The notes beneath the pieces were generated by a model. The model worked only from the letters and a program-made list of their open reading frames with translations. It searched no databases and was not told where the DNA came from. A program made the position numbers and the translations under genes. This document shows, in pieces, positions 5,753 through 63,975 of a stretch of DNA of 64,000 nucleotides (its first letter is position 1; each line of letters starts with the position of its first letter). The DNA lies in assembly GCF_963676685.1 (NCBI RefSeq), contig NC_092352.1:80228001-80292000 (forward strand), in the 5' to 3' direction. The DNA is from Mytilus edulis (Eukaryota).

Positions 5753-7394
5753 GTCTCATTTGAAATCATACTGTCTGTTCTTTTTTATATAAACAATGAA
5801 GGAATGAACAACATTACCAATGACAGTATTTTTTTCTTCACGTGTCTAGTTTTTATTAAGTATCCACTAAGAGAACAAGTGAAACATTAAGTGTTGACAA
5901 ATTTTATACTATTTTTTTTTTGCGTCTTTTGAAAATAGATTGTTACCTGATACACTATATTTTTCTGTTTTGTGTCCTGTAATTCTCGTCACAAAGAGTG
6001 GACAACTATATTCTGCACTATTTTTGCCCATTATGGTTTTCAAAAATGTTATTATTGATCATGTTTGTAATGCTTACTGCGTTTGCATTTTGTTATTATG
6101 CAACATATACGGATGACTAATGAGTTACAATTAGCTTAAATAAGGAACACAGCAAACATTCATTTCATCACGGATATTGTGATGCAGATGAACATCACAA
6201 GACTAATTTAAGTTTGTAATGGTAATACTCTCGTTTCAGACAAAGCATTTTAATACATGTAATTGATCGTTGTCGAAATCTTGTTTCAAGGAAAGCATAC
6301 ACATTAAATAATGGTCTCTTGTGTTTTCAAAATAGATAGGAATACAAGCTAAAATACTGAATAGATCATGTCTTTATTCTAACAGTCTTGTTATTGCGAC
6401 GAAAGTTTGCGAACTTCAACTTGTTTCAAATTCAGTCAATCTGGTGAATTAGTTATTGTCTTGCAATTTGGTTTGATCACAACAGTTTGTGATTTTCATA
6501 AATAAGAAATATGGTAATTTTTTCGATAAATTTCATTTTGTGCAAATTTCATTTAAATTGCTTTTATTGTGTCAAGACATTTGGTTAGTAGTCGGTATAT
6601 TTGTTTTGCATCTAGAAGACGCCATATTCGTTAAATTTTGTACTGGAAACGTCATCAGTATTCTATAGCTAGTACAAGTTATAATTATGTTATTGTGCAC
6701 ACTAATCATGAAAGTGTCTGATATAAACGGTGGTATCATGAGATAACAGATAATGTTTGGACCATCAAAGTTGCTTTAATGTCATTAACATTTCATGTTG
6801 TTAAGCTTTCAGACTTAATTAGATGTTTCAGCTTTTTGATACACTGACAGATGAAACTCTTCAACACTAATATCAATTTACGATGGATAGTCAGTTTTTC
6901 TATATTGGAGTAAACAAATGGAAAAGTAGAAAAAAGTGATATGACTGCTAATTAGACAAATCTTTAACAGAGATTAAATGGCATATAATAGGGCATCGCA
7001 CAGCCCTCAACATTGTGAAAAAAAACCGTACCAATCACCCATATGTTCAACAATAGATCATCATACATTTTGTTAAACAAAATTATAAAGTCATGTCAAA
7101 TCATTTAAAAAAGGTTGACTCTTGAATGTATATGTCAATCATAACAGCTGATAATCTACAGTATGCTATTCAAATAAACATGCATTGACCATCTTGTCCA
7201 TTCGTTTTTGATGTGTTTGGTCATTTGATTTTGCCATGTGATTATAGATTTTCCGATTGGATTTTCCTCTGAGTTCAATATTTTTGTGATTTTACTTTTT
7301 GACCTAAAAACCTTCATTGTAATTTAATGCTTTAATTTGTATGTACTGTTGCTGTAAATATATAAATCATGAGTATTTTATTAAAACTTTCAAA

Positions 7395-9568
7395 GCGGTT
7401 TGTATTGTACCGGCCGACAAAGCAGCCAACAATGTGGTGGTGGTATGCCGTAAATACTATACGGACGTTCTAAAGAATGAAATTTTAAATTCATCTACAT
7501 TCAAGTCCATGCGATCCACAGAGAGCCATATAGTAAACAAACATATCATGACCACATCAAAGCTTAAGGCTTCTTCTGAACATTTGAAGGTCCCTACTAT
7601 GTATTGGCTTCCCAAACTACACAAAGAAACATTCAAATATCGTTTCATCTCGGCCTCTAGTAAGTGTTCTACAACTAATCTTTCATTGCTTTTTTACAAG
7701 TTCATCATTTACTATCAGAGAGCTTATTATAAACTATTGTAATAAAATATATGTGAACAAAATTCTATGGATGTTTTAGATAAATTACGTGCTTTTGATG
7801 GTCCTTTTGTTTCTGTTGACAGTTGTGATTGCTCTAGTCTCTTTACTCTACACTTCCACACTATCTTATCAAACAAAATGTTCCTATTTAATTAAATGGT
7901 CGTTTGGTAAATCTGATTGCAAATATATTTGCTGCAACTCATTTAAAGCCGTCTTCTCCAATGAGAAAGGAAAATATGCTAGATATACTACTGGAGTTGT
8001 GATGAGATGATTGAAGCTGTTAATTTTCTCCTTAATAATATTTTTGTGCGTTTCGGCAACAAAATTTATCGACAGGTTGTAGGTATCCCATTGGGCACTA
8101 ATTGCGCTTCTGTAATAGCAGACTTGTTTTTTTGTACTGTTACGGATCACAGTTTATGACTAAACTCAGTAAAGACCCGTCGAAATTTTATTTACTTAAT
8201 AAATTTAACAATACTTACCGTTATCTTGATGATATTTTGTCGTTAAATAATCAACAATTTTCTCAATATAGTGCTGGAGCTTACCCCAAGGAACTTACTT
8301 AAAATAAATCAAATTTAGACGGTAGTAACTGTTCTTTCCTAGATTTAGATGTTTCGGTTTTAAACGGGAAACTCCACACTTTACGACAAAAGGGAGATTT
8401 TTCGTTCCCTATTGTTAGTTTTCCATTTTAGATTGTGTTGTTCCTTTTGCACCATCTCACGGTTTTCATATTTCACAGCTCGTTCGATATGCCCGTGTCT
8501 GTTGTAACGTTTTTGATTTTAACGTACGTAATCTATGTACTACTGGTAAATTATTAAACCAGGGATATCGTTACCATAAATTACTTACAACCTTTACTAA
8601 ATTTCTCCATAGATATAAAGATTTGGATTTTGATTATACCTGTAGAGAACTTATTTCAAACTGGTTAGCACATCCTCATTTTTACGGAAATGTTGTTAAC
8701 CGTGCCCGGAAATTAAGAAATGATAATTGTTAACTTATCCCTTAAATAAACTTATTCTCAAAGGTTACCAATTCAACACTGTTATAAGATCATTGAATAT
8801 TGTTTTATTGGTATAAATATTGATTGATTGTTATCAGTAAATTAAAGCAAACTAAGTATTACTAAGATGTTATATACATATACACATTTATGAATCTGTT
8901 GATACCTGTATCTTAGCATTGCATAAGGTCATGTTTTTCTCTGACTGTTTATAACGTTTTTACTCAAAATCCATTGGTTGTTGGATGTGTACAGATTGAT
9001 AACTTAGTCTTAGATGCATGATTTTTTTATCACTTAATGGCTTTGAACTAGCTGTCCGTTAACTGTGAGTACTCTCCGATCTGTTCCTAGTGTGGTTTTT
9101 TGTTGTTGTTGGGATGTACAGTTAGGCGGCAAGTCCACTTGTTTGTTGTCCAACTGATGATTTAATCCCTTTTCAACTGATTTTCATAGTTCGTTCTTGT
9201 GTTGTACTGTTACACCACTGTTCAAGGTTAGGGGAAGGTTGGGATACCGCTAGCATGCTTAACTCCGCCATATAATATATGTTCATGCCTGTCCCAAGTC
9301 AGGAGCTCGTAATTCAGTGGTTTTTGTTTGTTTATGTGTTACATATTTGTTTTTTCGTTCATTTTTTTTATAGATAAATAAGGCCGTCAGTTTTCTCGTT
9401 TGAATTGTTTTACATTGTCATTCAGAGCCTTTTACAGCCGACTATGCGGTATGGGCTTTGGTCATTGTTGAAGACCGTACGGTGACCTGTAGTTGTTAAT
9501 TGTTGTGTCATTTTGGTCTCTTGTGTAGAGTTGTCTCATTGGAAATCATACCACATCTTCTTTTATAT
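7395..9568 (+). mobile_element. Decayed Penelope-like retroelement (Naiad-type, family B): RT plus long 3' UTR
   Basis: VPADKAANNVVVVCRKYY, MYWLPKLHK..YRFISASSKCSTT, GIPLGTNCAS, YRYLDDILSLNN, then the RT C-terminus to ~8850. Many frameshifts and stops. The UTR ends CATACCACATCTTCTTTTATA. Confidence 0.88.
9215..9320 (+). ncRNA. Decayed type-P5 twister ribozyme motif (PLE family B)
   Basis: CCACUG..GGGGAAGG..UAA CUCC GC C..G CCUG U CCC AA GU CAGG A..CAGUGG. The T1 strand carries a substitution. Confidence 0.65.
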
Positions 9569-16926: not shown

Positions 16927-19900
16927 TTTTGAAAAGCTTTTGGTTTACAAAATGGTTAATACAGCTTATTCTGAATTTAAACTGAGAGCCATAACATGTA
17001 CCTATTTTTCCAGTTTTTTTTAAAGTTCATTATCAGTTTTCAAATATCATATGTTGTGCATGTCTTTTACAAAATGCAAAAGCTATTCATGAATGCATAT
17101 TATCAGGTGCCAGCTGAAGCCCGTCTTCGGATGCGGGATTTTCATTGTTGGCCTTCTGCTCTTTGGTCGGGTTGTTGTCACCTTGACACAATCCCCATTT
17201 CCATTCTAAATTGTTTTCGTTCATGTTCATAATTAAATTTTACAATGGCAGTAACAGATGAATGAGTGCTTTGCTCACAAGAATCTGATAACACACCGTT
17301 CATACCTCGGGATATCTAATATAAGTCAATAAACTTCCACCCTTGAAAAATTTTTGAAGTTGTGTATCTTTTTACAAAACCATTGGTATCCGAAAGGTCT
17401 ATAACACAGAATTAGAACGGAGTATTGTCAAATCCATGTAAGCGAAGTGTGGAAATAGTATTTGTATTTCATCTAACTTGGATGTAAATGACCTATTCAT
17501 TAATTCTGTCAATCAAATCAATGCTGATATTCTTTTTAACTCTCTATCAATTTCAGTAGGATAACATACGAAAAAACTATGTTCCCATATATTGGACTTG
17601 ATATACCAGTTTTCATTAATACACAAAAGGGACTTCTAAACGGAAAATATACCAAAAAGGGAAAAAATGAAATCATACAAGACATTATTAAAATTATCGA
17701 TCAAACCCAAAGTCACCAGGAAGCACATGCCATGATACCAATGTTTAAATCTATATTAACGAGTAATTATTGTAAGCTAAACGGGGAATACAGATGTATT
17801 TAAGGTCGGAATGAAATACCGTCTTCTATATTTATGTGCCTGTCAAATGCCAGGTTACCGTATGTCTTATATTTATAACATATTTTTGTTTATTTAGAGA
17901 ATTAGGTTCTGATGGTACTTCTTTGATCGTATATGAATCCCTCAACTTTTTAGACTCGAGACGATTGACACCATAGTGGTCTTTATTTATGTATATCGTA
18001 GGGTTGCTTTTTTAAATGAATTTTGAAAAACTTTTTTTTTCCATTAGGGACCAAATGGTTGATTAGGTCAGAAAAGTATAGTTTCCTGGATGTTTTTCTC
18101 TAAGGTAAGAGATATGCCTAAGAGATATGCAGTGGAATAGAAACGTTTTCGACGCCACGTGTAATGTATGCAGTGTGTAATACTTTCTGTTAAAAAAAAC
18201 CTTCACACAAACTCACAGAAATACCGGATCCTTGGTGGTAAATTGCCATGCAAAATTACCTGCCCAATCCAACATGCGTCCTTGTTTTGACCATGTTTGT
18301 ACAACAAGTGCAGAACAATTAGCCATATCTATTTCATAGCAGTAAGCCGACTTATCTATCGAATTTATTGTAAATTTGTATTAGTTCTGAATATGCATGA
18401 TTTTTGTGTGCTAAAGAAACAACAACAATCAATCAACACATGTTCATACATTATTTCAGCTTAAAAATTATAGCCGCTTTTAGTTGTTTTTGTTTTTGTA
18501 ATTGAAATTGGAACATTTATTTTGTTTCAGTATTTTGACGAATATCATACAAGGGATCCCAAATATCATACGTTTAACCATTTTGACCTGTTTTGTTTTG
18601 TTTAAATTGTTATTTTTTCTATACAGTAAAGACACATTTTATACTTGTGAACACATAGTATTTTAAAGTTTCTTGACTTCATTTGTATACGTCTGTTGTT
18701 CATATCTCTATATAAAAAAGAAGAGGCCGTACCAATCAAAACTATCTACCAATGTTTAAAAAGACAGGCATTTAAGTAAGCAACTGGAGGTCACTATACG
18801 GCCTTCATTAATGAGAAACAACAAATACCGTAAAATTTAAAATGCCCTTACATGACAGACGTGAAATAAGATAAACTTCAAAATAAGCAAAAAGCAAAAA
18901 AAAAAATGGCCTGATTTATGAATGACAAAAACAAGAGAAAAACAAATATAACAATGCATATCCTTGTTCAGTGTGTTGTGTTATGTTGCTTTTTCTCTTG
19001 CTTTACATTTTCCCAAATCGTCGTTTTATTCGTTTAATTTTTTTCTGGTTTGAATTATCTTCAACTACTACATGTTTACCCCGAGACAAAATTGCCTTAG
19101 CCTTATTTGGCTTTTTTTTTGTTGAAAAATTCAGTTTTAATACTCTTTAACAAATTTTATAAATAAAGAAGGGGAACCATGATCAAACGTAAAGTTAAAA
19201 TATGGATTTTATTTGAGTTATCGACAAAACTATCTAGTTGTTTTATTTTGTTTCCCACTGTCTCTTTTCAACCTGTACTCCACTCATAAGTCATACTCAT
19301 TGCAAGGGATAAAGGTCATATTCGTCGACAGTTAAATGAGATTGATGAGAAATTACTGGAACATAAATTTATGTTATCTCGTGTCTTGGCTCGTCCGTTA
19401 ATGATATGTTTTTTTCCTAAATCAGCTTATCATGCCTGTGTACTAAAGACTATTAATTATTATTGTTTGATAACCATAATCTATTTTCCGTGTTAAGTAA
19501 TCACCCCTGCAGACCAAAAATGTGTCTTCAAAGAAATCAAAGTGTTTTCTTATTTATCTAGCCGTTATAAAAAAAAAACGCTATTGTTCACGCTGAAAAT
19601 AAAATTACCTGCATGGAGGTATTAATTGATCATACCAAAATTATTACAATAACCGCTATAGAGATATCTGAAATATTACCGTACGACTAGTCTAGAGATG
19701 ATAATTATAATGTTTAAAAAGAATTCTTCTTTTAATTACTCTTTACTTCATCCTATATTTATTATTTATATATGTATAAAAAAATGTATCACCATTTTGG
19801 CGTCGTCATATTTGGTTATTTGAATTAATTAACAAGCTATATATTTTGTGGAAGGATTCTTATCTAAATATTTCAATTACAAAGGAAATATATTGAGATA

Positions 19901-20563
19901 ACAATACTGCTGTTAACGTATTATTGGTATTGCGTATGCATGCTGTCCTGTTCGGTAGACATATGTCGCCATGTACATAGTCACGTCGTCCTCAGACCAA
20001 TACGTACATTACTTATGAGCTGATAAAATTAGTAGAAAATATTTACTTTAGTTTGTATATGCCTAAAACTTTATCAAAAGCTAAATGAATAATTTCTCCT
20101 GTATTGTTGATTTGTTATCAAAAAGTAAAATAACAAAAATACCGAACTCTGATAAAAATTCAAAACGGAAATTCCCTCATCAAATGGCAAAATCAAAAGC
20201 TTAAATACATCAAACAAATGGATAATAACTGTCATATGTCTGGCTTGGCACAGACAAACCGCACATCTTTTTATTTCAAATTCAAACTATAATTTGACGT
20301 ATCGACATTTCTAAATAAATCGGCAGTTTTTAAGGATGAAGGACGTAAAATCCAAGTTTTAAGAAATACATGTAACTCTTCAAATCAATTCGACGTTTGT
20401 GTCAATCCCTTTCGTCAAGTGTTTTAATCTTTCAATACTATATGCAACTAGTTTCTTGAAATTATTAGGTTAAGGAAATTATTCAACCAATATGTGTATT
20501 ACATGTTTACGTACCCTTAACGTTTATAAGTAAAATTGATGAGATATTTGGTATGTAAAAATT

Positions 20564-21748
20564 GTGTTTTTCAGATTGTCCCACTTTTAAAATTCCAGGT
20601 AAAAAAGTAATAACATTTTATGGGACAATCAGGAATATGTTTGTGGGACAATTTGAAAGTTTAAATGTTAAACAATTGGGAATTGTTTTGATAGTGGTTA
20701 ATTTGTTTTATAGTGTGTAGGAGGTTAATTACAGGTTACTCATCAATGTAACTTATAAAATATAAAAAAAACATGAACAAATGATAATATTTACATATTA
20801 TATCCTCAAAATGGAATATAATATGAAGTCAACAAATTTTAGTCTCAGATGCATGATTTTTTTATTAAGTTTTTATTGGCTTTCAATAAGCTGTCAGTAA
20901 CTGCGATTACTCTTTGATCTGTACTTACCGTCTTTGTTGTTTGGATGCAAAATTTGTCTTTGTTTTTGTAAGATGCATTTCTATGTGTCAACTGAATTTA
21001 ATAGTTTATTCTTATGTTGTACTGTTACAACACTGTCCCAGGTTAGTGAGATGTTTGGCGCCTTGAAATAAGTTTAACCCCGCCACATTATGTATGTGCC
21101 TGTCCCAAGGCAGGAGCCTGTAATTCAGTGGTTGTCGTTTATTGCTGTGTAACATATTTGTTTTTCGTCTATTATTTGTACATAAATTAGGTCTTTAGTT
21201 TTTCTCGTTGTAACTGGTATACATTTTTTACATCGGGGTCTTTTAAAGCTGACTATGCGGTATGGGCTAGTGGGAACATCTCTCCTTCAACAATTTTGTG
21301 TAGAGTGTAAAATGTAAATGAGTTTATACCGTCTTTTTTTAAATTGCATGCATTTTTTTCTAAATTTATCTAAAAACTTATTGAGAAAATATAATTAAAA
21401 TTACGGTATTGACATTTGTTTTATAAGAACCAAGAAATTGTATATTTGAATATACAATTTATTAATAACGTACCATTGTTGGTACATTTCATAAATCAGA
21501 ATTATTATATTTTATTAATCCACAATGCATTAATCTAATGATTTAAAAAACATTTTGTTTTATACTTTTATAAAATTAACATTAAATTTGCAATAATTAA
21601 TTCTTGTTTATATAGCAAAACAAACACCAGTTACATTGTTTATCTAAGAACATCTTACTTTAACAATAATGTGGGACAATCAGAACTTTTCATGTGGAAC
21701 AATCAGAACTCTAAAATTTTAAAAAGTGAGACAATCTGGAAAACAACC
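20564..21748. mobile_element. Non-autonomous Mutator-like (MULE) TIR element with a nested PLE family B 3' fragment (~20840-21267)
   Basis: ~30-bp TIRs GTTTTTCAGATTGTCCCACTTTTAAAATT and AATTTTAAAAAGTGAGACAATCTGGAAAAC. 9-bp TSD GTAAAAATT at 20555-20563 and 21749-21757. Empty site at ~26968 in the paralogous unit. Internal GGGACAAT repeats. Confidence 0.85.
21031..21130 (+). ncRNA. Decayed type-P5 twister ribozyme motif (PLE family B)
   Basis: P5 CAGGUU/AGCCUG. Core UAA CCCC GC CACAU..AUGUG CCUG U CCC AA GG CAGG A. Substitutions in the GGGGAGGG strand and in T2. Confidence 0.65.
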
Positions 21749-24700
21749 GTAAAAATTTATAACAAACTCTTCCGAGGTACCATGATTATAACGGAAAAAA
21801 AGAGTATAAATTGCTATTAAAATTATTAAAAAACAAAGCTGAAGAATATTGAGTTTAGATATTGTTTTGCAGATGATGACTCTAAAGTCAATATAATCTT
21901 GCAATAATGATTACTATAATAATTGTTATCACATATGTCCGTAAATGTCCTCCCTGATCTGAACACCGAGTCTGATATTAGTACTGGTATTATAATATAA
22001 AAGATAACTGTATTGATCACATAACGCATTGTCACTAATATTCATTCAATTTAAGCCTTCAAAAATTATTAGATAGACCAAGCACTGTGATATATAGTGT
22101 TTTTACATTTGCATTATGTTTTTAATTAACGGTTCATATTGGTTTTGTGAAATTTTTTTAAATAAGTAAACAATGTCTGGTGCTTTAGTGCGTTCTGTTT
22201 TGCTAGTAAGACGAACGTTTGAAAGAAGAAATAATCCTTTTTTAATAAGAGATAATATCCGTTTATATATAGTCTCTTCGAAATTATCATTTGCCAGTAG
22301 TAGATATTGCATACGCATGTGTTTGAAAAGCTTTTGGTTTACAAAATGGTTAAAACAGGTTATTCTGAATTTAAATTGAGGGTCATAACATGTACCTATT
22401 TTTCCTGGGTTTTTTTTCATTATCAGTTTTCAAATATGTTGTGCATGTCTTTTACAAAATGCAAAAGCTATTCATGAATGCATATTATCAGGTGCCAGCT
22501 GAAGCCCGCCCGGGTGCGGGATTTTCATTGTTGGCCTTCTGCTCTTTGGTCGGGTTGTTGTCACCTTGACACAATCCCCATTTCCATTCTAAATTGTTTT
22601 CATTCATGTTCATAATTAAATTTTACAATGGCAGTAACCGATAAATGAGTGCTTTGCTCACAAGGATCTGATAACACACCGGTCATGCCTTGGGTTATCT
22701 AATATAAGTCAATAAACTTCCACCCTTGAAAAATTTTGAAGTTGTGTATCTTTTTACAATTTTTACAATTCCACATTGGTATCCGAAAGGTCTATAACAC
22801 AGAATTAGAACGGAGTATTGTCAAATCCATGTAAGCGAAGTGTGGACATAGTATTTGTATTTCATCTAACTTGGATGTAAATGAACTATTCATTAATTCT
22901 GTCATTCAAATCAATGCTGATATTCTTTTTAACTCTCTATTAATTTCAGTAGGATAACATACGAAAAAACTATGTTCTCATATATTGGACTTGATTTACC
23001 AGTTTTTATTAATACACAAAAGGGACTTCTAAACGGCAAATATACCAAAAAGGGAAAAAATGAAATCGTACAAGACATTATAAAACTTATCGATCAAACC
23101 CAAAGTCATCAGGAAGCTGATGCCATGATCCCAATGTTTTAATCATTATTAATGACTAATTATTGTAAGCTAAATGGGAATACAGATGTATTTAAGGTCG
23201 GAATGAAATACCGTCTTTTATATTTATGTGCCTGTCAAATGCAAGGTAACCGTATGTCTTATATTTATAACATATTTTTGTTTATTTAGAGAATTAGGTT
23301 CTGATGGTAATTCGTTGATCGTATTTGAATTCCTCAACTTTTTAGACTCGAGACGATTGGCACCATAGTGCTCTTTATTTATGTATATCGTAGGCTTGCT
23401 TTTTTCAATGAATTTTGAAAAACATTTTTTTTTCCATTAGGGACCAAATGGTTGATTAGGTCAGAAAAGAAAAGTTACCTGGATGTTTTTCTCTAAAGTA
23501 AGAGATATGCCTAAGAGATATGCAGTGGAATAAAAAAGTTTTCGACGCCACGTGTAAATTAGGTAGTGTATAATACTTTCTGTTAAAAAAACCTTCACAC
23601 AAACTCACAGAAATACCGGATCCTTGGTGGTAAATTGCCATGCAAAATTACCTGGCCAATCCAACATGCGTCCTTGTTTTGACCATGTTTGTACAACAAG
23701 TGCAGAACAATTAGCCATATCTATTTCATGGCAGGAAGCCCACTTACCTATCGAATTTGTTGTAAATTTGTATTAGTCCTGCATATGCATGATTTTGTTG
23801 TTCTAAAGAAACAACAACAATCAATCAACACATATTCATACATTATTTCAGCTGAAAAATTATAGCCGCTTTTAGTTGTTTTTTGTTTTTTTGTAATTGA
23901 AATTGGAACATTTATTTTGTTTCAGTATTTTGACGAATATTATACAAGGGATCCCAAATCTCATACGTTTAACCATTTTGACCTGTCTTTGTTTTTTTTA
24001 ATTTGTTATTCTATGCAGTAAAGACACATTTTATACTAGTGAACACATAGTATTTTAAAGTTTCGTGACTTCATATGTGTACGTCTGTTGTTCATATCTC
24101 TATATAAAAAAAGAGGTCGTACCAATCACAGCTGTCTACCAAAGTTTAAAAAGACATGCATTTAAGTAAGCAACTGTAGATCACTATACGGCCTTCAATA
24201 ATGAGAAACAACCAATACCGTAAAATATAAAATGCCCTTACATGACAGACGTGAAATAATATAAACTTCAAAATAAGCAAAAATCAAAAATAATGGCCTG
24301 ATTTATGCATGACAAAAACAAGAGAAAAACAAATATAACAATGCATGTCCTTTTTCAGTGTGTTGTGTTATGTTGCTTTTTCTCTTGCTTTACATTTTCC
24401 CAAATCGTCGTTTTATTCGTTTAACTTTTTTCTGGTTTGAATTATCTTCAACTACTACATGTTTACCCCGAAACAACATTGCCTTAGCCTTATATGGCAT
24501 TTTATTGTTGAAAAATTCAGCTTTGATACTCTTTAACAAATTTTATAAATAAAGAAGGGAACCATGATCAAACGTTAAGTTAAAATATGGATTTTATTTG
24601 AGCTATCGACAAAACTATCTAGTTGTTTTATTTTGTTTCCCACTGTCTCTTTTAAACCTGTACTCCACTCATAAGTCATACTCATTGCAAGGGATTAAGG

Positions 24701-25650
24701 TCATATCGTCGACAGTTAAGTGAGATTGATGAGAAATTACTGGGACATAAATTTATGTTATATCGTGTCTTTGCTCGTCCGTTAATGATATGTTGTTGTT
24801 TTTTCTAGATCAGCTTATCATGCCTGTGTACTAAAGATTATTCATTATTATTGTTTGATAACCATAATTTATTTTCCGTGTTAAGTAATCACCCCTGCAG
24901 ACCGAAAATGAAAGAAATCAAAGGATTTTCGTATTTATCTAGCCGTTATAAAGAAACGCTATTGTTTACGCTGAATATAAAATTAGCTGCATGGAGGTAT
25001 TAATTGATCATACCAAAAGTATTACAATTAGCGCTATAGAGATATCTGAAATATCACTGTACGACTAGTCTAGAGATAATGATTATAATGTTTAAAAGGA
25101 ATTCATCTTTTAATTACTCATTACTTCATCCTATATTTATTATTTATATATGTATAAAAAAATGTCTCACCATTTTGGCGTCGTTATATTTGATTATGTG
25201 AATTAATTAACAAGCTATATATTTTGTGGAAGGATTCTTATCTGAATATTTCAATAACAAAGGAAACATATTGAGATAACAATACTGCTGTTAACGTATT
25301 ATTGGTATTGCGTATGCATGCTGTCCTGTTCGGTAGACATATGTCGCCATGTACATAGTCACGTCGTCTTCAGACCAATACGTACATTACTTATGAGCTG
25401 ATAAAATTAGTAGAAATATTTACTATAGTTTGTATATGCCTAAAACTTTACCAAAAGCTAAATAAATAATGTGTTATCAAAAAGTAAAATGACAAAAATA
25501 CCGAACTCTGATAAAAATTCAAAACGGAAATTCTCTAATCAAATGACAAAACCAAAAGCTCAAATACATCAAAGAAATGAATAATTACTGTCATATTCCT
25601 GGCCTTGGTACAGACAAACTGCAAACCTTTGTTTCAAATTCAAACTATAA

Positions 25651-26714
25651 AATAAAATTGAGAATGGAAATGGGGAATGTGTCAAAGAGACAACAACCCG
25701 CCCAAATAAAAAACAACAGCAGAGGGTCACCAACAGGTCTTCAATGTAGCGAGAAATTCCCGCACCCGGAGGCGTCCTTCAGCTGGCCCCTAAACAAATA
25801 TATACTAGTCCAGTGATAATGAACGCCATACTAATTTCCAAATTGTACACAAGAAACTAAAATTAAAATAATACAAGACTAACAAAGGCCAGAGGCTCCT
25901 GACTTGGGACAGGCGCAAAAATGCGGCGGGGTTAAACATGTGTGTGAGATCTCAACCCTCCCCCTATACCTCTAACCAATGTAGTAAAGTAAACGCATAA
26001 CAATACGCACATTAAAATTCAGTTCAAGAGAAATCCGAGTCTGATGTCAGAAGATGTAACCAAAGAAAATAAACAAAATGACAATAATACATAAATAACA
26101 ACAGACTACTAGCAGTTAACTGACATGCCAGCTCCAGACTTCAACTAAACTGACTGAAAGATTATGATTTCATCATATGAACATCAGGCACAATCCTTCC
26201 CGTTAGGGGTTTAGTATCATACCATCATAACATATATGAGAAGAACATAACCCGTGTCATGCCAACAACTGTTTTTAGAATAAATGTGTTTAGTTCCGAT
26301 GCAAAGACCTTATCAATGACTCAATATTAACGCCAAAATATGCAATCTTTAATGACTTGACAACAGTATCGTAATTATATCCCTTCTTAATAAGTCTATT
26401 CAAAGGTTTTGTAAGTTTCTGAGGTGAATACTGACACCTTTGTGCTTTATAAAGAATATTACCATAAAAAATTGGATGTGAAATACCTGAACGTATTAAA
26501 AGTCTGCATGTTGAGCTATATTTACGAATAATGTCTTTATACCGATGATAAAATTTAGTAAAAGTTTTGACTAGTTTGTGATATCGAAAACCCTGGTGTA
26601 ATAATTTTTCAGTAATACATAAATTTCTCTCGTTAAAATCTAAAACATTGTTACATACACGAGCGAATCGTACAAGTTGAGATATATAAACACCGTAAGA
26701 TGGTGACAAGGGAA
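25651..26714 (-). mobile_element. Young 5'-truncated PLE (Naiad-type, family C): intact RT C-terminus plus 3' UTR
   Basis: ORF 26290-26709 SPSYGVYISQLVRFARVC..KLLHQGFRYHKLVKTFTKFY is homologous to the family A and B C-termini. The element is absent from the paralogous site at ~20290. Confidence 0.9.
25889..25975 (-). ncRNA. Type-P5 twister ribozyme, apparently intact; predicted cleavage U^A between 25934 and 25933
   Basis: Reads UUAGAGGU AUA GGGG G A GGG [UUGAGAUCUCACACACAUGUU] U^A A CCCC GC CGCA UUUU UGCG CCUG U CCC AA GU CAGG A GCCUCUGG. It maps position by position onto the O. sativa twister core. P2, P3, P4, P5, T1 and T2 can all form. Confidence 0.85.
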
Positions 26715-27014
26715 TAGTTTATCGTATCGACATTTATAGATAAAACGGCAGTTTAAGGATGAATAACGTAAATTCAAGTTTGGGAACATAACTCTAAAAT
26801 CAATTCGACTTTTGTGTCAATTCCTTTCGTCAAGATACTCTAGTCTTTGAATGTTATATGCAACTAATTTCTTGAAATTATTAGGATAAGGAAATTAACC
26901 AATCTATGCATTAAATTTTCTGGAAACCCTTAACTTTTATCAATCAAATTATTAAGATATTTGCTATGTATAAATGTATAACAAATTCATCAGAGATACC
27001 AGGATTATAATGTG

Positions 27015-27056
27015 TCCAAGACGCGCGTTTCGTCTACAAAGACTCATCAGTGACGC
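27015..27056 (-). ncRNA. Type I hammerhead ribozyme with intact catalytic core, in a retrozyme-like repeat fragment (26985-27115)
   Basis: GCGUCA CUGAUGA GUCU UUGU AGAC GAAA CGCGCG UC^UUGGAC. Palindromic stem III (ACGCGCGU). Stem I is partly disrupted. Confidence 0.8.
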
Positions 27057-29709
27057 TCAAATAAAAAAAAAGTATAAAAAGGCAATTAAAAATACAAGGT
27101 GAGGAACATTGAGTTAAGATATTGTTTTGCAGATGGTGACTTTAAAGTCAATATAACCTTGCTATAATAATTACTATAATAATTGTTATTACATATGTCC
27201 GTAAATGTCCTCCCTGAACCGAACATCGAGTCTGATATTAGTACTGGTATCATAATATATAAGACAACTGTATTGATCACATAACGCATTGTGATTAATA
27301 TTCATTCAATTTAAGCTTTCAAAAGTATTTAGATAGATTAAGCACTGTGATATATAGTTTTTTTACGTTTGCATTATGTTTTTAATTTACGGTTCAAATT
27401 GGTTTTGTGAATGTTTTTAATAAGTAAACACTGTCTGGTGCTTTAATGCGTAATGTTTTGCTAGCAAGACGAACGTTTGAAAGAAGAAATAATCCATTTT
27501 TAATAAAATAAGAGATAATATCAGTTTATATATTGTCTCTTCGAAATTATCATTCGCCAGTAGTAAATATTGCATACGCATATGTTTGAAAAGTTTTTCG
27601 TTTACAAAATGGTTAATACAGGTTATTCTGAAGTTAAATTGAGGGTCATAACATGTACCTTTTTTTCCTGGGTTTTTTTAAGTTCATTATCAGTTTTTCA
27701 AATATGTTGTGCATGTCTTTTACAAAGTGCAAAAGCTATTCATAAATGCATATTATCAGGTGCAAGCTGAAACCCGTCTCCGTGGGCGGGATTTTCATGG
27801 TTGGCCTTCTGCTCTTTGGTCGGGTTGTTGTCACCTTGACACATTCCCCATTTCCATTCTAAATTGTTTTCGTCCATGTTCATAATTAAATTGTACAATG
27901 GCACTAACCGATGAATGAGTGGTTTGCTCACAAGCTAGGATCTGATAACACACCGTTCATACTTAGGGTTATCTTATATTAGTCAATGAACGTCCTCCCT
28001 TGAAATTTTTGAAGTTGTGTATCATTTAACAAAACCATTGGTATCAGAAAGGTCTTTAAAACAGAACTAGAATGGAGTATTGTCAAATACATGTAAGCAA
28101 AGTGTGGACATAGTATTTGTATTTCATCTGATTTTGATGTAAATGAACTATTCATTAATTCCTTAAATCAAATCACTGCTGATGTACTTTTTCACTCTCT
28201 ATGTATTTCAGTAGGATAACATACGAAAAAAACTATGTTCCTATATTGGACTTGATATACCAGTTTTCATTAATATACAAAAGAAACTTCTAAACGGAAA
28301 ATATACCAAAAAGGGAAGAAATGAAATCATACAAGACATTATTAAAATTATCGATCAAACCTAAACACACCAGGAAGCACATGCCATGATACCAATGTTT
28401 AAATCTATATTAATGACTAATTATTGTAAGCTGAATGGGGAATACAGATGTCTTTAAGGTCGGAATGAAATCCCGTCTTCTATATGTATGTGCCTGTCAA
28501 ATGCCAGGTTACCGTATGTCTTATATTTATGACATATTTTTGTTTATTTAAAGAATAAGGTTCTGATGGTAATTCGTTGATCGTATTTAAATTCCTCATT
28601 TTTTTAGACTCGAGACGATTGACACCATAGTGGTCTTTATTTATGTATATCGTAGGGTTGCTTTTTGCAATGAATTTCGAAAAACATTTTTTTTTCTTTA
28701 GGAACCAAATGGTTGATAATGTCAGAAAAGTATAGTTACCTGGATGTTTTTCGCTAAGGTAAGATATATGTCTAAGAGATATGCAGTGGAATTAAAACTT
28801 TTTCGACTCCACGTGTAATGTAAGGAGTGTGTAATACTTTCTGTTAAAAAAAAACTCACACAAACTCACACAATCTCCGGATCCTTGGTGGTAAATAGCC
28901 ATGCAAAATTACTTGTCCAATCCAGCATGCGTTCTTGTTTTAACCATGCTGGTACAACAAGTGCAGAACAATTAGCCATATCTAAGTCATGGCAGTATGC
29001 CCACTTACTTATCGAATTTGTTGTCAATTTGTATTAGTTCTGAATATGCATGATTGTTGTCCGCTAAAGAGACAACAACAATCAATCAACACATGTTCAT
29101 ACATTATTTCAGCTTAAAAATTATAGCCGCTTTTAGTTGCTTTTTGTTTTTTGTAATTGAAACAGTAACATTATTTTGACGAGTATTATACTAGGGATCC
29201 CGAATATCATACGTTTAACCGTTTTGACCTGTTTTTGTTTTGTTATTTTTTGTATGCAGTAAAAAAACACTTTATACTAATGAACGCATAGTATTTTAAA
29301 GTTTCGTGACATTATATTTATACGGCTGTTGTTCATATCACCAAAGTATAGAAAGGAGAGGCCGTACAAATCACAACTATCCACAAAAATTTTAAAAAAG
29401 ACGTGCATTTAATAAAGCGACTGTAGGTCACTTTACAAACTTCAACAATGAGAAACAACCAATACCGTGAATATATAAAATGCCCTTACATGACAGATGT
29501 AAAATAATTCAAACTTAAAAATAAATAAAAATAAAAAACAATGACCTGATTTATTCATGACAAAAACAAGGGAAAAACAAATATAACAATAATGTTCTTT
29601 TTCAGTGTGTTGTGTTATGTTTCTTTTTCCTTTGCTTTACATTTTCCCAAAGTCTTTAGTTTGTTCGTTTAAAGTCTTGGGGTTTGAATGATCTTTAACT
29701 ATTACAGTT

Positions 29710-31596: not shown

Positions 31597-32320
31597 GAAA
31601 AATGTAAAATAACCAAAACACTGAACTCCAAGGAAGCGGAGTGTCCTTTATCAAATGGCAAAATCAAAAGTTTACACACATCAACCAAATGGAAAACAAC
31701 TGTCATATTCTTGACTTGATACATTCATTTTCTTATGTAAAACTATTGTGGATTAAACCTTGTTTTATAGCTAGCCAAACCTCTCACTGGTACAACAGTC
31801 GCATCAAATTCCATTATATTGACAACAATGTGTGAAAAAAAACCCAAACATAATAGGTTAAAATGTCGAAATAGGAGTACAAGAGTCAACATTGTGTAAT
31901 AAACTTAATCACTATAAAACAAACAAATATGTGAACAAAACAATGGCATATATACAAAGCACATACGCAACAATGAAAGACAAGATTACAAAAAATGTCC
32001 GCAGAACAACAAGACATTGGCGGGATGCATAAATACCGAGTCAGTCAAATGGATATTGCCAAAAAAATGAATTAACAGTAAAGATTCACAAAGACAAATA
32101 AGACATCACTATAACACATAATTAAGACGATAAACTACGTTAGTACTTAAAATCTATACTTCAAGACCATCATGTATTATTTGTGAGGTTGATACGGAAT
32201 ATTTGTCCACAATTTTTTGGTATCTTCCGCTGGCCTTTTTTTAGAAAAAGGACCAGACGATCTTTGACATAACACTGGTTCATCATCATTCTGCTCAGAC
32301 ACTGGTGGCGTTTGTAAGGT
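31597..32320 (-). mobile_element. PLE family D 3' fragment (RT C-terminus plus UTR); shorter family D pieces at ~7195-7300, 20120-20255, 25478-25615, 35160-35270, 38340-38620, 47885-48330
   Basis: Minus strand translates KRHQCLSRMMMNQCYVKDRLVLFLKK, then after a frameshift GRYQKIVDKYSVSTSQIIHDGLEV*, homologous to family A RKLLNQ..GRHHELVDRYGI.VSQM. Confidence 0.75.
31698..31800 (-). ncRNA. Decayed type-P5 twister motif (PLE family D)
   Basis: ACUGU..GUGA G A GGU UUGGCUAGCUAU AAAACAAGGUU UAA UCC AC..UAUCAAGUCAAGAA..ACAGU. P4 is disrupted. Confidence 0.55.
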
Positions 32321-38100: not shown

Positions 38101-38411
38101 GTGAACACTTTATGTTTGTCGAAGGATGTGGTCAATATTTATAGAATGATATAGATCTTGAAAGTTTGATTGAAAAATTCTTCAAAAGGGTAATATAATA
38201 ATTATTATCATACCTTATAAATTTTCAAAATGGGATAAGTTAATAAGTTGAGGAAAATCATATACTTTAACTAAATAGTAATATAAAGGTAAGCCTTATG
38301 TGGTTCTTCTTCTTTTGATTACGGACTGAAACATTTCGAATTGTTACCTTTTTACCTTTTTGTCTGATTGTTTGCTCACACATTGTTGTCAATATAATGT
38401 ATTTCTATGCG

Positions 38412-38521
38412 ACTGTCAGACTGATTTGTACAAGTGAGAGGCTTATCTAGCGATAAAACCAGGTTTAAACCACAATGTTCTACATTAGGGAATGCCTGAT
38501 CCAGGTCAGGAATATGGCAGT
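38412..38521 (+). ncRNA. Decayed type-P5 twister motif (PLE family D)
   Basis: ACUGUCA..AAGUGA G A GGC..AAAACCAGGUU UAA ACC AC..G CCUG AUCCAGGU CAGG AAUA UGGCAGU. Confidence 0.55.
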
Positions 38522-39244
38522 TGTATTCCATTCGTTTGATGTGTTTAAGCATTTAAGTTTGCCATTTTTTCCGTTTTAAATTAAATCTCCTCGGAGTTCG
38601 TTTTTCTTTTCTTTTACTTTTAAAACTAATTTGCACACAACTTTTGAATAGTATAAGGTGTCAGTTTATGATGGTATAAGGTCTGGAGTACATGGAGTCA
38701 CTCTGCAGATTTTTTTTTCAGATACGTTTGATTTTATTTGCAATTTCGAACAAATTATATCTTCCTTAAAACAGACGACACCACTGTTCAACATGTCTTA
38801 ATTCTATTTAAATAATGCTATATTTACAGCTGTTAATTTCTGTGTCATTTGGTCTCTTGTGGAGAGTTGTCACATTGGCAATCATACGACATCTTCTTTT
38901 TTATATTAAGATATTAAAAGTGCAAGCCAATGTTTATCTTGAGAATTGAAAATACTTTTAACATGTCATGAATATCCTCTGAGCTTCCTTTAAATATTCA
39001 TCGTCTAACTAATGAAAAAGACTTTATAACTATCAAGCATGCCAGGGTACATTAAAAATATATCCTCAACAAATATGACAGATTATAACTATTCTTGTTC
39101 CAATTGACCTATGCATTTCGATATCTCTATTAAGGTTGAAACAATGTCAAACACAACCATTGAATCATTTAATCCAAATTACTGAATAGAGTGTATAGTC
39201 GATTATGAATAATAAGGTGAATATTCAATGATTATAAATTCAAC

Positions 39245-47556: not shown

Positions 47557-47875
47557 TAGTATACCGCTGTTCGAAAGTCATAAATCAATTGAGAGAAAAC
47601 AAATCCGGGTTACGAACTAAAACTGAGGGAAACACATCAAATATAAGAGGAAAACAACGAAACAACAGAAATACTAAAAGCAAACAAAAAACCAAACGAC
47701 AATGAAACACACACAGCAACGAACTATAAGATAACAATTGCCATTTTCCTGACTTGGTACAGGACATTTTAAAAAAATAAATGGTGGGTCGAACCTGGTT
47801 TTGTGGTTGGCCAAACATCCCGCTTTCATGGCAAAGATAAATATAACACTAAAATGACACTATCACATGACAAGA
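47557..47875 (-). mobile_element. 3' UTR fragment of a presumed PLE (family E); a related tail lies at 55150-55397 (+)
   Basis: Carries the same twister module as family D. The terminus GAACAGCGGTATACTAC is shared with 55368-55384. No RT sequence is attached in this window. Confidence 0.6.
47738..47834 (-). ncRNA. Type-P5 twister motif (family E) with two core substitutions
   Basis: UUGCCAU GAAA GCGG G A UGU UUGGCCAA CCACA AAACCAGGUU C G A CCC AC CAUUU..AAAUG U CCUG U ACC AA GU CAGG AAA AUGGCAA. Confidence 0.7.
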
Positions 47876-62374: not shown

Positions 62375-63975
62375 AAAGAGTTGCGATATGATTGCAAATG
62401 AAGTGGTAGTAAGCAATTATAGGTGTCTTTACGGCCCTCAACAATGACAAAAACCCATACCGTATATTGGTCTATATAGGCACAGACATGAAAAATGTGA
62501 AATGGTTCAAACGGATAAACTCACGGCCTAATTTATAACAACACAATTTATGAAAAACAAATATCATTATTGACATGAACCAACGACAACCACTGAACTA
62601 TAAGGGCTCATGACTTGGGAGATGGACATACATAATATGCTAGGGTTTAGTATGTTGAGAGCGACAAACCTTCCCCAAACCGTGGATAGTGGTGTAACAT
62701 TACAATGAAATAAACTGTCAAAAAGCAGTTGCAATTGGGTTAACTTCAAATAAAATTATTACGAGGCACAAAGCACCACAATAAGAGTACTCGCAGTTAC
62801 TGAAAATGAGAGGCAGAAGATATCAAAGGTACATCCAAGTACATAAGTAGGAAATAAACTGACAACGTCATGGCAAAAAGGAAAAGGACCAAACGACAAA
62901 CAATAGCATACAAAACACAAAGAAAACAATAGACCAAGCTACACGAACAATACCAATAACTCGGGTGATCGCAGGCGCTCCGAAAGGGTAAGGAGATCCT
63001 GCTCTACATGTGGCACCCGTCCTGTTGCTAACATTAGTACAAACCTGATGATAAGTCTAATTCGGCAGGTTACATGTGGAGAAAAGTGACGGGATTGTAA
63101 TTCCGACAATTAGAACATATTCTTTGTCATCTGTGAAACTGATATTTTATAAAGGTCAACCAACTCGGGATAGGAAATGCAACTTCTGGAATATCGTGTC
63201 AACATGGATATATACATACTCCATACGCAAGCTCTGTCTGGAATGTTGCTATATGAACATAGAAATTGAAAGTTCACAACTAGGACGCTGAAATCATCTT
63301 TTTTGTCGTAAAGTTTTGCTCTAAACCTACTCTCATTGTCAATTTATAAAAATAAGTCAAATCATGAGGTAGACCTAACTATATCTGTTGTTTACTTCAT
63401 TTCAATTTCGATGGGATAAATGTGTTCAACGTATTCACCAATCTTGATTATTTAGTGAGAGGGTATCAGGTATATAGCGACACGCGAAGTTAAAGGATAA
63501 TGCTACATTCATTTCATTATTTTTAAGAAGCTTTTGTATGCATTCAGTTTCAAATGAATACAGGAACATGTTGGGAAGAAGAAGAGCACAGTTAATTCTC
63601 AATCAGGAAAGCCAATTCTTTTTTAAAAAACACGTTCTTCACACTTTACAAATATGTTGTCAATCAAGAAATCAAGCATCTTGATAATGTCAGTTTCAGA
63701 GAAGTTTTTATAAATAAGAAGATTTGGTATGAGTGCCAATGAAACAATTATCCATCCAAGTCACAATGTATAAAACGTAAACATATATAGGTCTAAGTAC
63801 GGCATTCAACATTGAGCTTACATCAAATAGCTAGCTTTAAAGGACCCCAAATTGACAAGTTTGAAACAATTCAAACAGGAAAACCAACGGTCCAACCTTT
63901 ATAAAAAACGAGAAACTAAAAACACGTATGAACCACACCAACAAACGACAACCACTGAACAACAGACTCCTGATT
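62375..63975 (-). mobile_element. PLE fragment cluster: family B UTR (62375-62805, decayed twister at 62590-62692), family A-like RT plus UTR (62810-63710), family B-like tail (63715-63975)
   Basis: Reverse complements match 9040-9560 and 1095-2087, e.g. AACTTCTCTGAAACTGACATTATCAAGATGCTTGATTTCTTGATTGACAACATATTTG. Confidence 0.8.

Follow-up and report, generated by a model that had tools for sequence, protein, structure and literature searches.

The Naiad-type insertion and its host element

The window, i.e. the whole 64,000-nucleotide stretch of Mytilus edulis DNA analysed here, contains a 5'-truncated copy of a Naiad-type Penelope-like retroelement on the minus strand. The end of its RT ORF is followed, in the sense of the element, by a SECIS-like element and by a 101-base module that can be read as a twister ribozyme opened at P5. 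Related module copies are found elsewhere in the window. The main features are the following.

25651-26714, minus strand: 5'-truncated family A Naiad-type copy, 1064 bp, 3' end at about 25651 (common 3' boundary; empty paralogous site)
26290-26709, minus strand: C-terminal part of the RT ORF, 139 aa with the stop counted (the ORF of longer copies extends to the RT motifs GTNCAPL and FRYLDDIL)
26174-26238, minus strand: SECIS-like element, some 50 nt past the stop codon (RF00031, 32.3 bits against a gathering score of 35, E 0.0003)
25882-25982, minus strand: whole twister-like module closed by a long P5 (sequence; pair counts; model R1, 104.8 bits)
9214-9321, plus strand: family B module copy, slightly decayed (model R1, 82.2 bits)
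21029-21132, plus strand: family C module copy, 3' half of the core intact and GAGGG side decayed (model R1, 99.7 bits)
62589-62693, minus strand: old decayed module copy (model R1, 76.8 bits)

All copies of the element share a 3' boundary, at about 25650-25653, while their 5' ends are variable, as expected of target-primed reverse transcription. Copies of 95-100% identity are found across the chromosomes, and the element protein gives more than 7000 first-look candidates in the genome. The first-pass annotation, made from sequence alone, had described a young insertion with an empty paralogous site near 20290 and an RT stop about 315 nt upstream of the module in the element's sense. Both claims held. 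Copies that are 99-100% identical exist, the empty site is seen in the match of 24600-25650 to 19215-20292 at 91% and of 26723 onward to 20298-20562, and the stop codon lies at 26290-26292.

The empty site belongs to a segmental duplication of about 3 kb and about 91% identity, between 19215-22528 and 24600-27800 of the window. Each paralogue has later gained an insertion of its own: a 1263-bp segment at 20562-21825, which carries the family C module, and the family A copy at 25651-26714.

The identity of the host is best seen in locus L048, a near-full copy in which a GIY-YIG-like segment, a CxC motif and the RT are found in one frame. The segment L048:5025-5378 (minus) shares the frame of the RT ORF and can be aligned with residues 96-186 of the homologue P0043 (E 1e-16), whose Pfam GIY-YIG domain covers residues 86-169; Pfam gave no score on the L048 segment itself. 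The CxC motif is present as CNC followed by HVITGDL, aligned with CEC and HVITGDL of P0043, and pseudo-LTRs are present as direct repeats at 2153-2424 and 6036-6296, about 3.88 kb apart. The earlier assignment to a Naiad-type host is supported by the RT and CxC motifs, the GIY-YIG alignment to P0043 and the pseudo-LTRs.

An SECIS-like match follows the stop codon in every copy examined (the window copy and five others). Just before the GIY-YIG motif of L048, two in-frame TGA codons (L048:5381 and 5414, minus) are found at cysteine positions of P0043. From these sequence features we infer that the element is probably a selenocysteine-coding Naiad, like those of clams and spiders; selenoprotein-coding Naiads were described by Craig et al. 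2021 (PMC8557442). The same study states that Naiads lack canonical hammerheads, as the first-pass annotation had stated, and never mentions twister. In agreement, our Rfam search found no hammerhead inside the element, neither in the window copy nor in further copies.

A further homologue of the Naiad protein, P0109, is filed publicly as a hypothetical protein of a Campylobacter isolate. Contaminating invertebrate DNA in the Campylobacter assembly is the most likely origin of this entry.

Structure of the module

Read on the minus strand, 25982-25882 forms a module that can be folded as a twister opened at P5. Bases are numbered below from 25982 (base 1) on this strand, and the parts of the module are listed in their order in the RNA, all on the minus strand.

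25968-25982: P5 5' strand, bases 1-15 (pairs with 25882-25896; compensatory changes among families A, B and H)
Directly after the P5 5' strand (bases 1-15) and before GGGG 19-22: AUA (sequence)
25956-25964: P2 3' strand GGGG (19-22), G23, A24 and T1 GGG (25-27) (invariant between families A and B)
25960: G23, the proposed general base (sequence position)
Between GGG (25-27) and U49: a loop of 21 nt (sequence)
25945-25954: self-complementary box 1, UGAGAUCUCA, at the place of the P1 3' strand (palindrome kept with different letters in six families)
25936-25941: self-complementary box 2, ACAUGU, at the place of the P1 5' strand (8-10 nt in other subfamilies)
25932-25934: U49^A50 A51, predicted cleavage between 25934 and 25933 (position relative to P2, as in published twister parses)
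25926-25931: P2 5' strand CCCC (52-55) and T2 GC (56-57) (sequence, pair counts)
25914-25925: P3 hairpin CGCA-UUUU-UGCG (58-69) (families B and C have A-U in place of a G-C pair)
25897-25913: P4 CCUG (70-73) with CAGG (82-85), loop L4 UCCCAAGU (74-81) and junction A86 (sequence; a local Rfam twister-P1 alignment covers P3-P4)
25882-25896: P5 3' strand, bases 87-101 (compensatory changes)

The base-by-base reading of 25975-25889 in the first-pass annotation was exactly right, and so was its statement that the core positions of twister are present in P5-permuted order, which is supported by both the sequence and the descriptor search below. However, it gave a P5 that is too short; the helix has 15 positions, 25982-25968 with 25896-25882, and contains a UU/UU internal loop. 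It also left unstressed the absence of P1, the G-U wobble in T2 and the failure of the Rfam twister models.

Agreement with the twister core

The criteria for the cleavage site, P2, P4 and T1 are all satisfied, the twister consensus being that given in PMC5408937, PMC8501958 and PMC11662667. At the cleavage site, UAA (25934-25932) and GAGGG (25960-25956) are both identical to the published Schistosoma parses (PMC8501958). P2 has four base pairs, CCCC 25931-25928 with GGGG 25964-25961, and these pairs are 82% intact in 13 sequences, decayed copies included. P4, CCUG-UCCCAAGU-CAGG-A at 25913-25897, includes the UCCCAAG loop, the closing G-C pair and the conserved A. The GGG of L1 is complementary to the CCC of L4, forming T1. 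The sequence carries a complete twister core and the required pairings, that of T2 with a G-U wobble.

Compared with the type P5 twister (RF02684; Roth et al. 2014 via PMC5408937), the order of the elements is the same when the fold is opened at P5, and N^AA, GC, UCCCAAG, A and GAGGG are shared, as are the 4-bp P2, P4, the optional P3 and the complementarity of T1, while that of T2 includes a wobble. The Naiad module differs by having no P1 hairpin, where it has instead the 21-nt loop with two self-complementary boxes, as well as by one G-U in T2, a P5 of 12-15 bp and a score far below threshold. The Schistosoma parse (UAA/P2/GC/P3/P4/GUCCCAAG/P4/P2/GAGGG; PMC8501958) agrees with the Naiad module element by element. 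However, the last base of L4 is U instead of the C of the Schistosoma L4 (GUCCCAAGC), and the order is permuted at P5.

To quantify the resemblance we used a descriptor, AA-P2-GC-N3-40-P4-UCCCAAGN-P4'-A plus the P2 complement followed by GAGGG within 75 nt, with a 4-nt P2 and a 4-bp P4. It matches once in the 64-kb window, at the module (25982-25882), and 39 times in the 385 kb of repeat copies examined; in 40 Mb of first-order Markov sequence modelled on the window it gave no match. The unpaired part of the descriptor occurs about once per Mb in the simulated Markov sequence. From the pattern frequency and the pairing probabilities we estimate about 0.05 chance matches per whole genome of 1.37 Gb, and these descriptor statistics all but rule out a chance origin of the core match.

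Departures from known twisters

Three features do not fit a standard twister. First, there is no P1 helix, as the bases after GGG and the bases before U^AA do not pair in cis. Second, T2 consists of a C-G pair and one G-U wobble in all intact families (the loop ends in GU, not GC), whereas the Rfam twister-P1 consensus and the Schistosoma parses (PMC8501958) have G-C. Third, Rfam gave nothing at gathering thresholds on the window, the module or related loci.

A search with the Rfam twister models had been proposed earlier as a check, and no twister match above 13.3 bits was found; this best match is a local twister-P1 hit that aligns P3-P4 and falls far short of the gathering threshold of 67.2 bits. 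A genome-wide search with RF02684 (threshold 37.6 bits) gave no match, only 79 of about 31,000 candidates having been scored. The failure of the Rfam models counts against simple membership of the twister class. For RF02684 it can be speculated that the 21-nt loop and the 12-nt P3, set against a model of 58 positions, are responsible.

Deviations like the absence of P1 and the T2 wobble are tolerated by twisters in published assays. P1 is conserved in the phylogeny yet dispensable for cleavage (PMC5408937). A screen of about 2600 natural type-P1 twisters (PMC11662667) saw no effect of imperfections in P1, and among the defects it covered, G-U wobbles in the pseudoknots were tolerated best.

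Predicted secondary structures are divided. The minimum free energy fold of a family B copy reproduces P5, P2, P3 and P4, but those of family A prefer a nested alternative, GGGUU with AACCC, which competes with T1 and P2 and speaks against the proposed fold.

Conservation and covariation across families

The module occurs in several families, of which D, E, F and G are older; families C, E and G are represented by few copies. Family B (e.g. L077) has about 2200 first-look candidates, and more than 100 of its genomic copies share an identical top model score. In many family B copies a G is missing before AGGG, so that either P2 is shortened or the proposed catalytic G is lost, which speaks against an active ribozyme.

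Between families A and B the 3' regions overall are about 62% identical. Within the module all 35 core positions are identical (35/35), against 43/75 (57%) of the other positions (Fisher p = 5e-7). The stems have changed in a compensatory manner, clearly in P3 (G-C to A-U) and in P5 (G-C to C-G and C-G to A-U). In variant H, found on the marine metagenome contig L088, P5 is fully re-written with its pairing retained; its best match in the M. edulis genome is 94% identical, at a single locus. T1 is altered on both sides, GGG/CCC having become AGG/CCU in family E and GGU/ACC in family G, although these are few and decayed copies and the support is only moderate. P2, P4 and T2 are invariant in intact families, i.e. 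they are supported by conservation and not by covariation.

In an alignment of 13 sequences, the proposed structure including both pseudoknots has 89.8% of its cells paired, compared with 33-43% after a shift of the partners by 1-3 columns. Both sides have changed in nine pairs, a number that none of 500 shuffles reaches. These pairing controls are only indicative, as the sequences are related to one another and were themselves used to derive the structure.

The core is conserved far more than its surroundings and the stems covary; we read the twister fold as being under selection.

Self-complementary boxes in place of P1

Within the 21-nt loop, two self-complementary boxes occupy both P1 strand positions. 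Box 1 lies just after GGG-U, and box 2 ends at the cut site or one base before it. Their letters in the different families are listed below.

Box 1: family A, UGAGAUCUCA; families B and H, GGGAUCCC; family C, GGCGCC; family F, GAGCGCUC; family E, UGGUACCA; family G, UAGCUAGCUA or UUGGCCAA
Box 2: window copy, ACAUGU; another A subfamily, AAACAUGUUU; family B, AACAUGUU; family H, AAACUAGUUU; family E, AAACGUUU

The palindromes are retained through the central bases of the boxes, which a hairpin loop would not require, and this favours pairing between two RNAs. RNAcofold favours dimers by 8-13 kcal/mol; however, it does so through an alternative pairing that is not that of a twister, and the calculation is therefore not discriminating.

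It is possible that P1 has been replaced by the palindromes and that folding or cleavage needs two paired modules. This is an inference and the least secure step of our interpretation. A bolder reading, for which there are no cleavage data and which can only be put forward as a possibility, is an obligately dimeric twister that is active only when two modules pair. The pairing partners could be the upstream pseudo-LTR and downstream 3' UTR modules of a single read-through transcript, or they could come from two separate transcripts. With both modules cut, exactly one Naiad RNA unit would be freed, with ends that a host tRNA ligase could join into a circle.

Proposed function

We suggest that the module is probably a twister-class self-cleaving ribozyme of type P5 in the 3' UTR and pseudo-LTR of selenocysteine-coding Naiads. 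Cleavage itself is inferred, as we have no cleavage data.

Full-length copies carry the module both upstream of the ORF, in the pseudo-LTR, and downstream of it, separated by one unit (about 3.9 kb). Loci L039, L040, L042 and L043 have the upstream module; the upstream repeat of L048 begins 22 nt after the cut site. In the proposed mechanism the RNA would cut itself between U (25934) and A (25933). If this happened at one module and again at the next, the RNA set free would be one unit long and bear 5'-OH and 2',3'-cyclic phosphate ends. Cleaved RNA ends would be expected at AACCCCGCC. Release of unit-length RNA is the role that has been proposed for the hammerheads of canonical Penelope-like elements (PMC4209133; PMC6765202).

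No significant pile-up of truncated-copy 5' ends was found at the cut site, which counts against cleavage; 3 of about 16 start 10-23 nt downstream. Those parts of the first-pass interpretation that could be checked held, while catalysis and the role in processing of transcripts remain inferences.

Alternative explanations

The alternative that survives best is a twister-derived but catalytically dead structured RNA. It could be a handle in the 3' UTR for the RT in target-primed reverse transcription, or a signal for dimerisation or packaging, with the palindromes, and not cleavage, as the selected function. In its favour are the missing cis P1, the T2 wobble, the failing Rfam models and the strong maintenance of both palindromes. 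In family G, P3, P4, P5, T1 and the palindrome are retained although the GC of T2 is gone and P2 is imperfect, so the scaffold can outlast the full core. Further, it is in the 3' region, where the module is found, that other retroelements such as stringent-type LINEs and R2 have their RT-binding elements.

However, all nucleotides known to matter for twister catalysis are invariant between families that are 57% identical elsewhere. The A that follows the cut, the G of GA and the bases of L4 are among these invariant nucleotides, and a scaffold would have no need of exact unpaired bases. The deviations that are seen are of the kinds tolerated in active twisters (PMC5408937, PMC11662667). We consider a dead scaffold unlikely.

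A signal at the DNA level of the pseudo-LTR (a promoter or protein-binding site), or a mere chance resemblance to twister, is very unlikely: Penelope-like pseudo-LTRs do carry promoters (Craig et al. 2021, PMC8557442) and palindromes could in principle bind dimeric proteins, but P3, P5, T1 and both palindromes have stayed paired through compensatory changes of their letters, which speaks for an RNA structure and not a fixed DNA word, the palindrome letters are wholly different between families, and chance would provide only the roughly 0.05 descriptor matches per whole genome estimated above.

Relation to known ribozymes of retroelements

The preferred reading, a self-cleaving twister of type P5, can be compared with three known systems. 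The T-variant twisters of Perere-3 (RTE) in Schistosoma mansoni (PMC8501958) are also borne by a retrotransposon, have a weak or absent P1, share the same loops and have UUG after GAGGG. They differ in being of type P1 and lying at the 5' end of an APE-type LINE, where they trim the upstream co-transcript, whereas the Naiad module is of type P5 and belongs to a GIY-YIG Penelope-like element, in its 3' UTR and pseudo-LTR.

The minimal type-I hammerheads of canonical Penelope-like elements (PMC4209133) resemble the Naiad module in their pseudo-LTR location, very high copy number and covarying families. Here too the helix next to the cut site (helix III) is reduced and palindromic, and action as a dimer has been proposed (PMC4209133). 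However, they belong to another ribozyme class and are reportedly absent from Naiads (PMC8557442). Finally, a mini-twister without P1 cleaves at a near wild-type rate (Kosutic et al. 2015, via PMC5408937), but it is an engineered construct and not a natural element, and has no palindromes.

Our search of the open-access literature, which left subscription journals largely uncovered, yielded no account of a twister in Penelope-like elements or Naiads. Among retrotransposons, Perere-3/RTE LINEs are known to carry twisters at their 5' end (PMC8501958), a review mentions unpublished twister work on the RTE superfamily (PMC7761336), and a 2024 screen listed bivalve twister candidates, of type-P1 forms only (PMC11662667).

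Canonical Penelope-like elements all carry hammerheads, while Naiad, the most abundant clade in bivalves, was reported with none (PMC8557442). This reported absence left undecided whether ribozymes are of any importance to Penelope-like elements. If our reading is correct, the need for a self-cleaving RNA would be general in these elements and be met in Naiads by another class of ribozyme. Twister, about whose biology little is known, would then have a second role in retroelements besides that at the 5' end of RTE-type LINEs, and by a rough count there would be perhaps tens of thousands of natural type-P5 copies per genome. It would also offer a natural variant with P1 replaced by palindromes, in which dimer-dependent twister activity is directly testable. 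Should the dimer reading hold as well, two ribozyme classes would serve the replication cycle of Penelope-like elements, twister having been recruited independently as the second.

Additional observations

An older repeat family, G, is found at 47726-47844, 31696-31802 and 38381-38540 of the window as well as at L039:647-739 and L009:667-778. It shares P3, P4, a 12-bp P5, the palindrome and the co-varied T1 (GGU/ACC); the GC of T2 is missing and P2 is imperfect. We considered it as a divergent twister, and it may be one, as T1 covaries, although T2 is lost and P2 imperfect. Family G may also descend from the twister module in a degenerate or altered form.

Type-I hammerhead matches of 29-32 bits, against an Rfam threshold of 34, were seen at 27014-27054 of the window, L048:6907-6950 and L047:3404-3447, all on the minus strand and all in DNA flanking Naiad copies. 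The match at 27014-27054 was rejected as a part of the element, as it lies outside the Naiad copy and a similar match was found in only 1 of 14 further loci. The L048 match adjoins a 323-nt direct repeat (two copies) and resembles a retrozyme.

One copy of the family A module, L042:3621-3711 (minus), has clustered A-to-G changes and a GC content of 0.65, compared with 0.51 in its relatives. Such a pattern is expected if ADAR edits a double-stranded RNA intermediate that is reverse-transcribed afterwards, which is a possible origin of the cluster.
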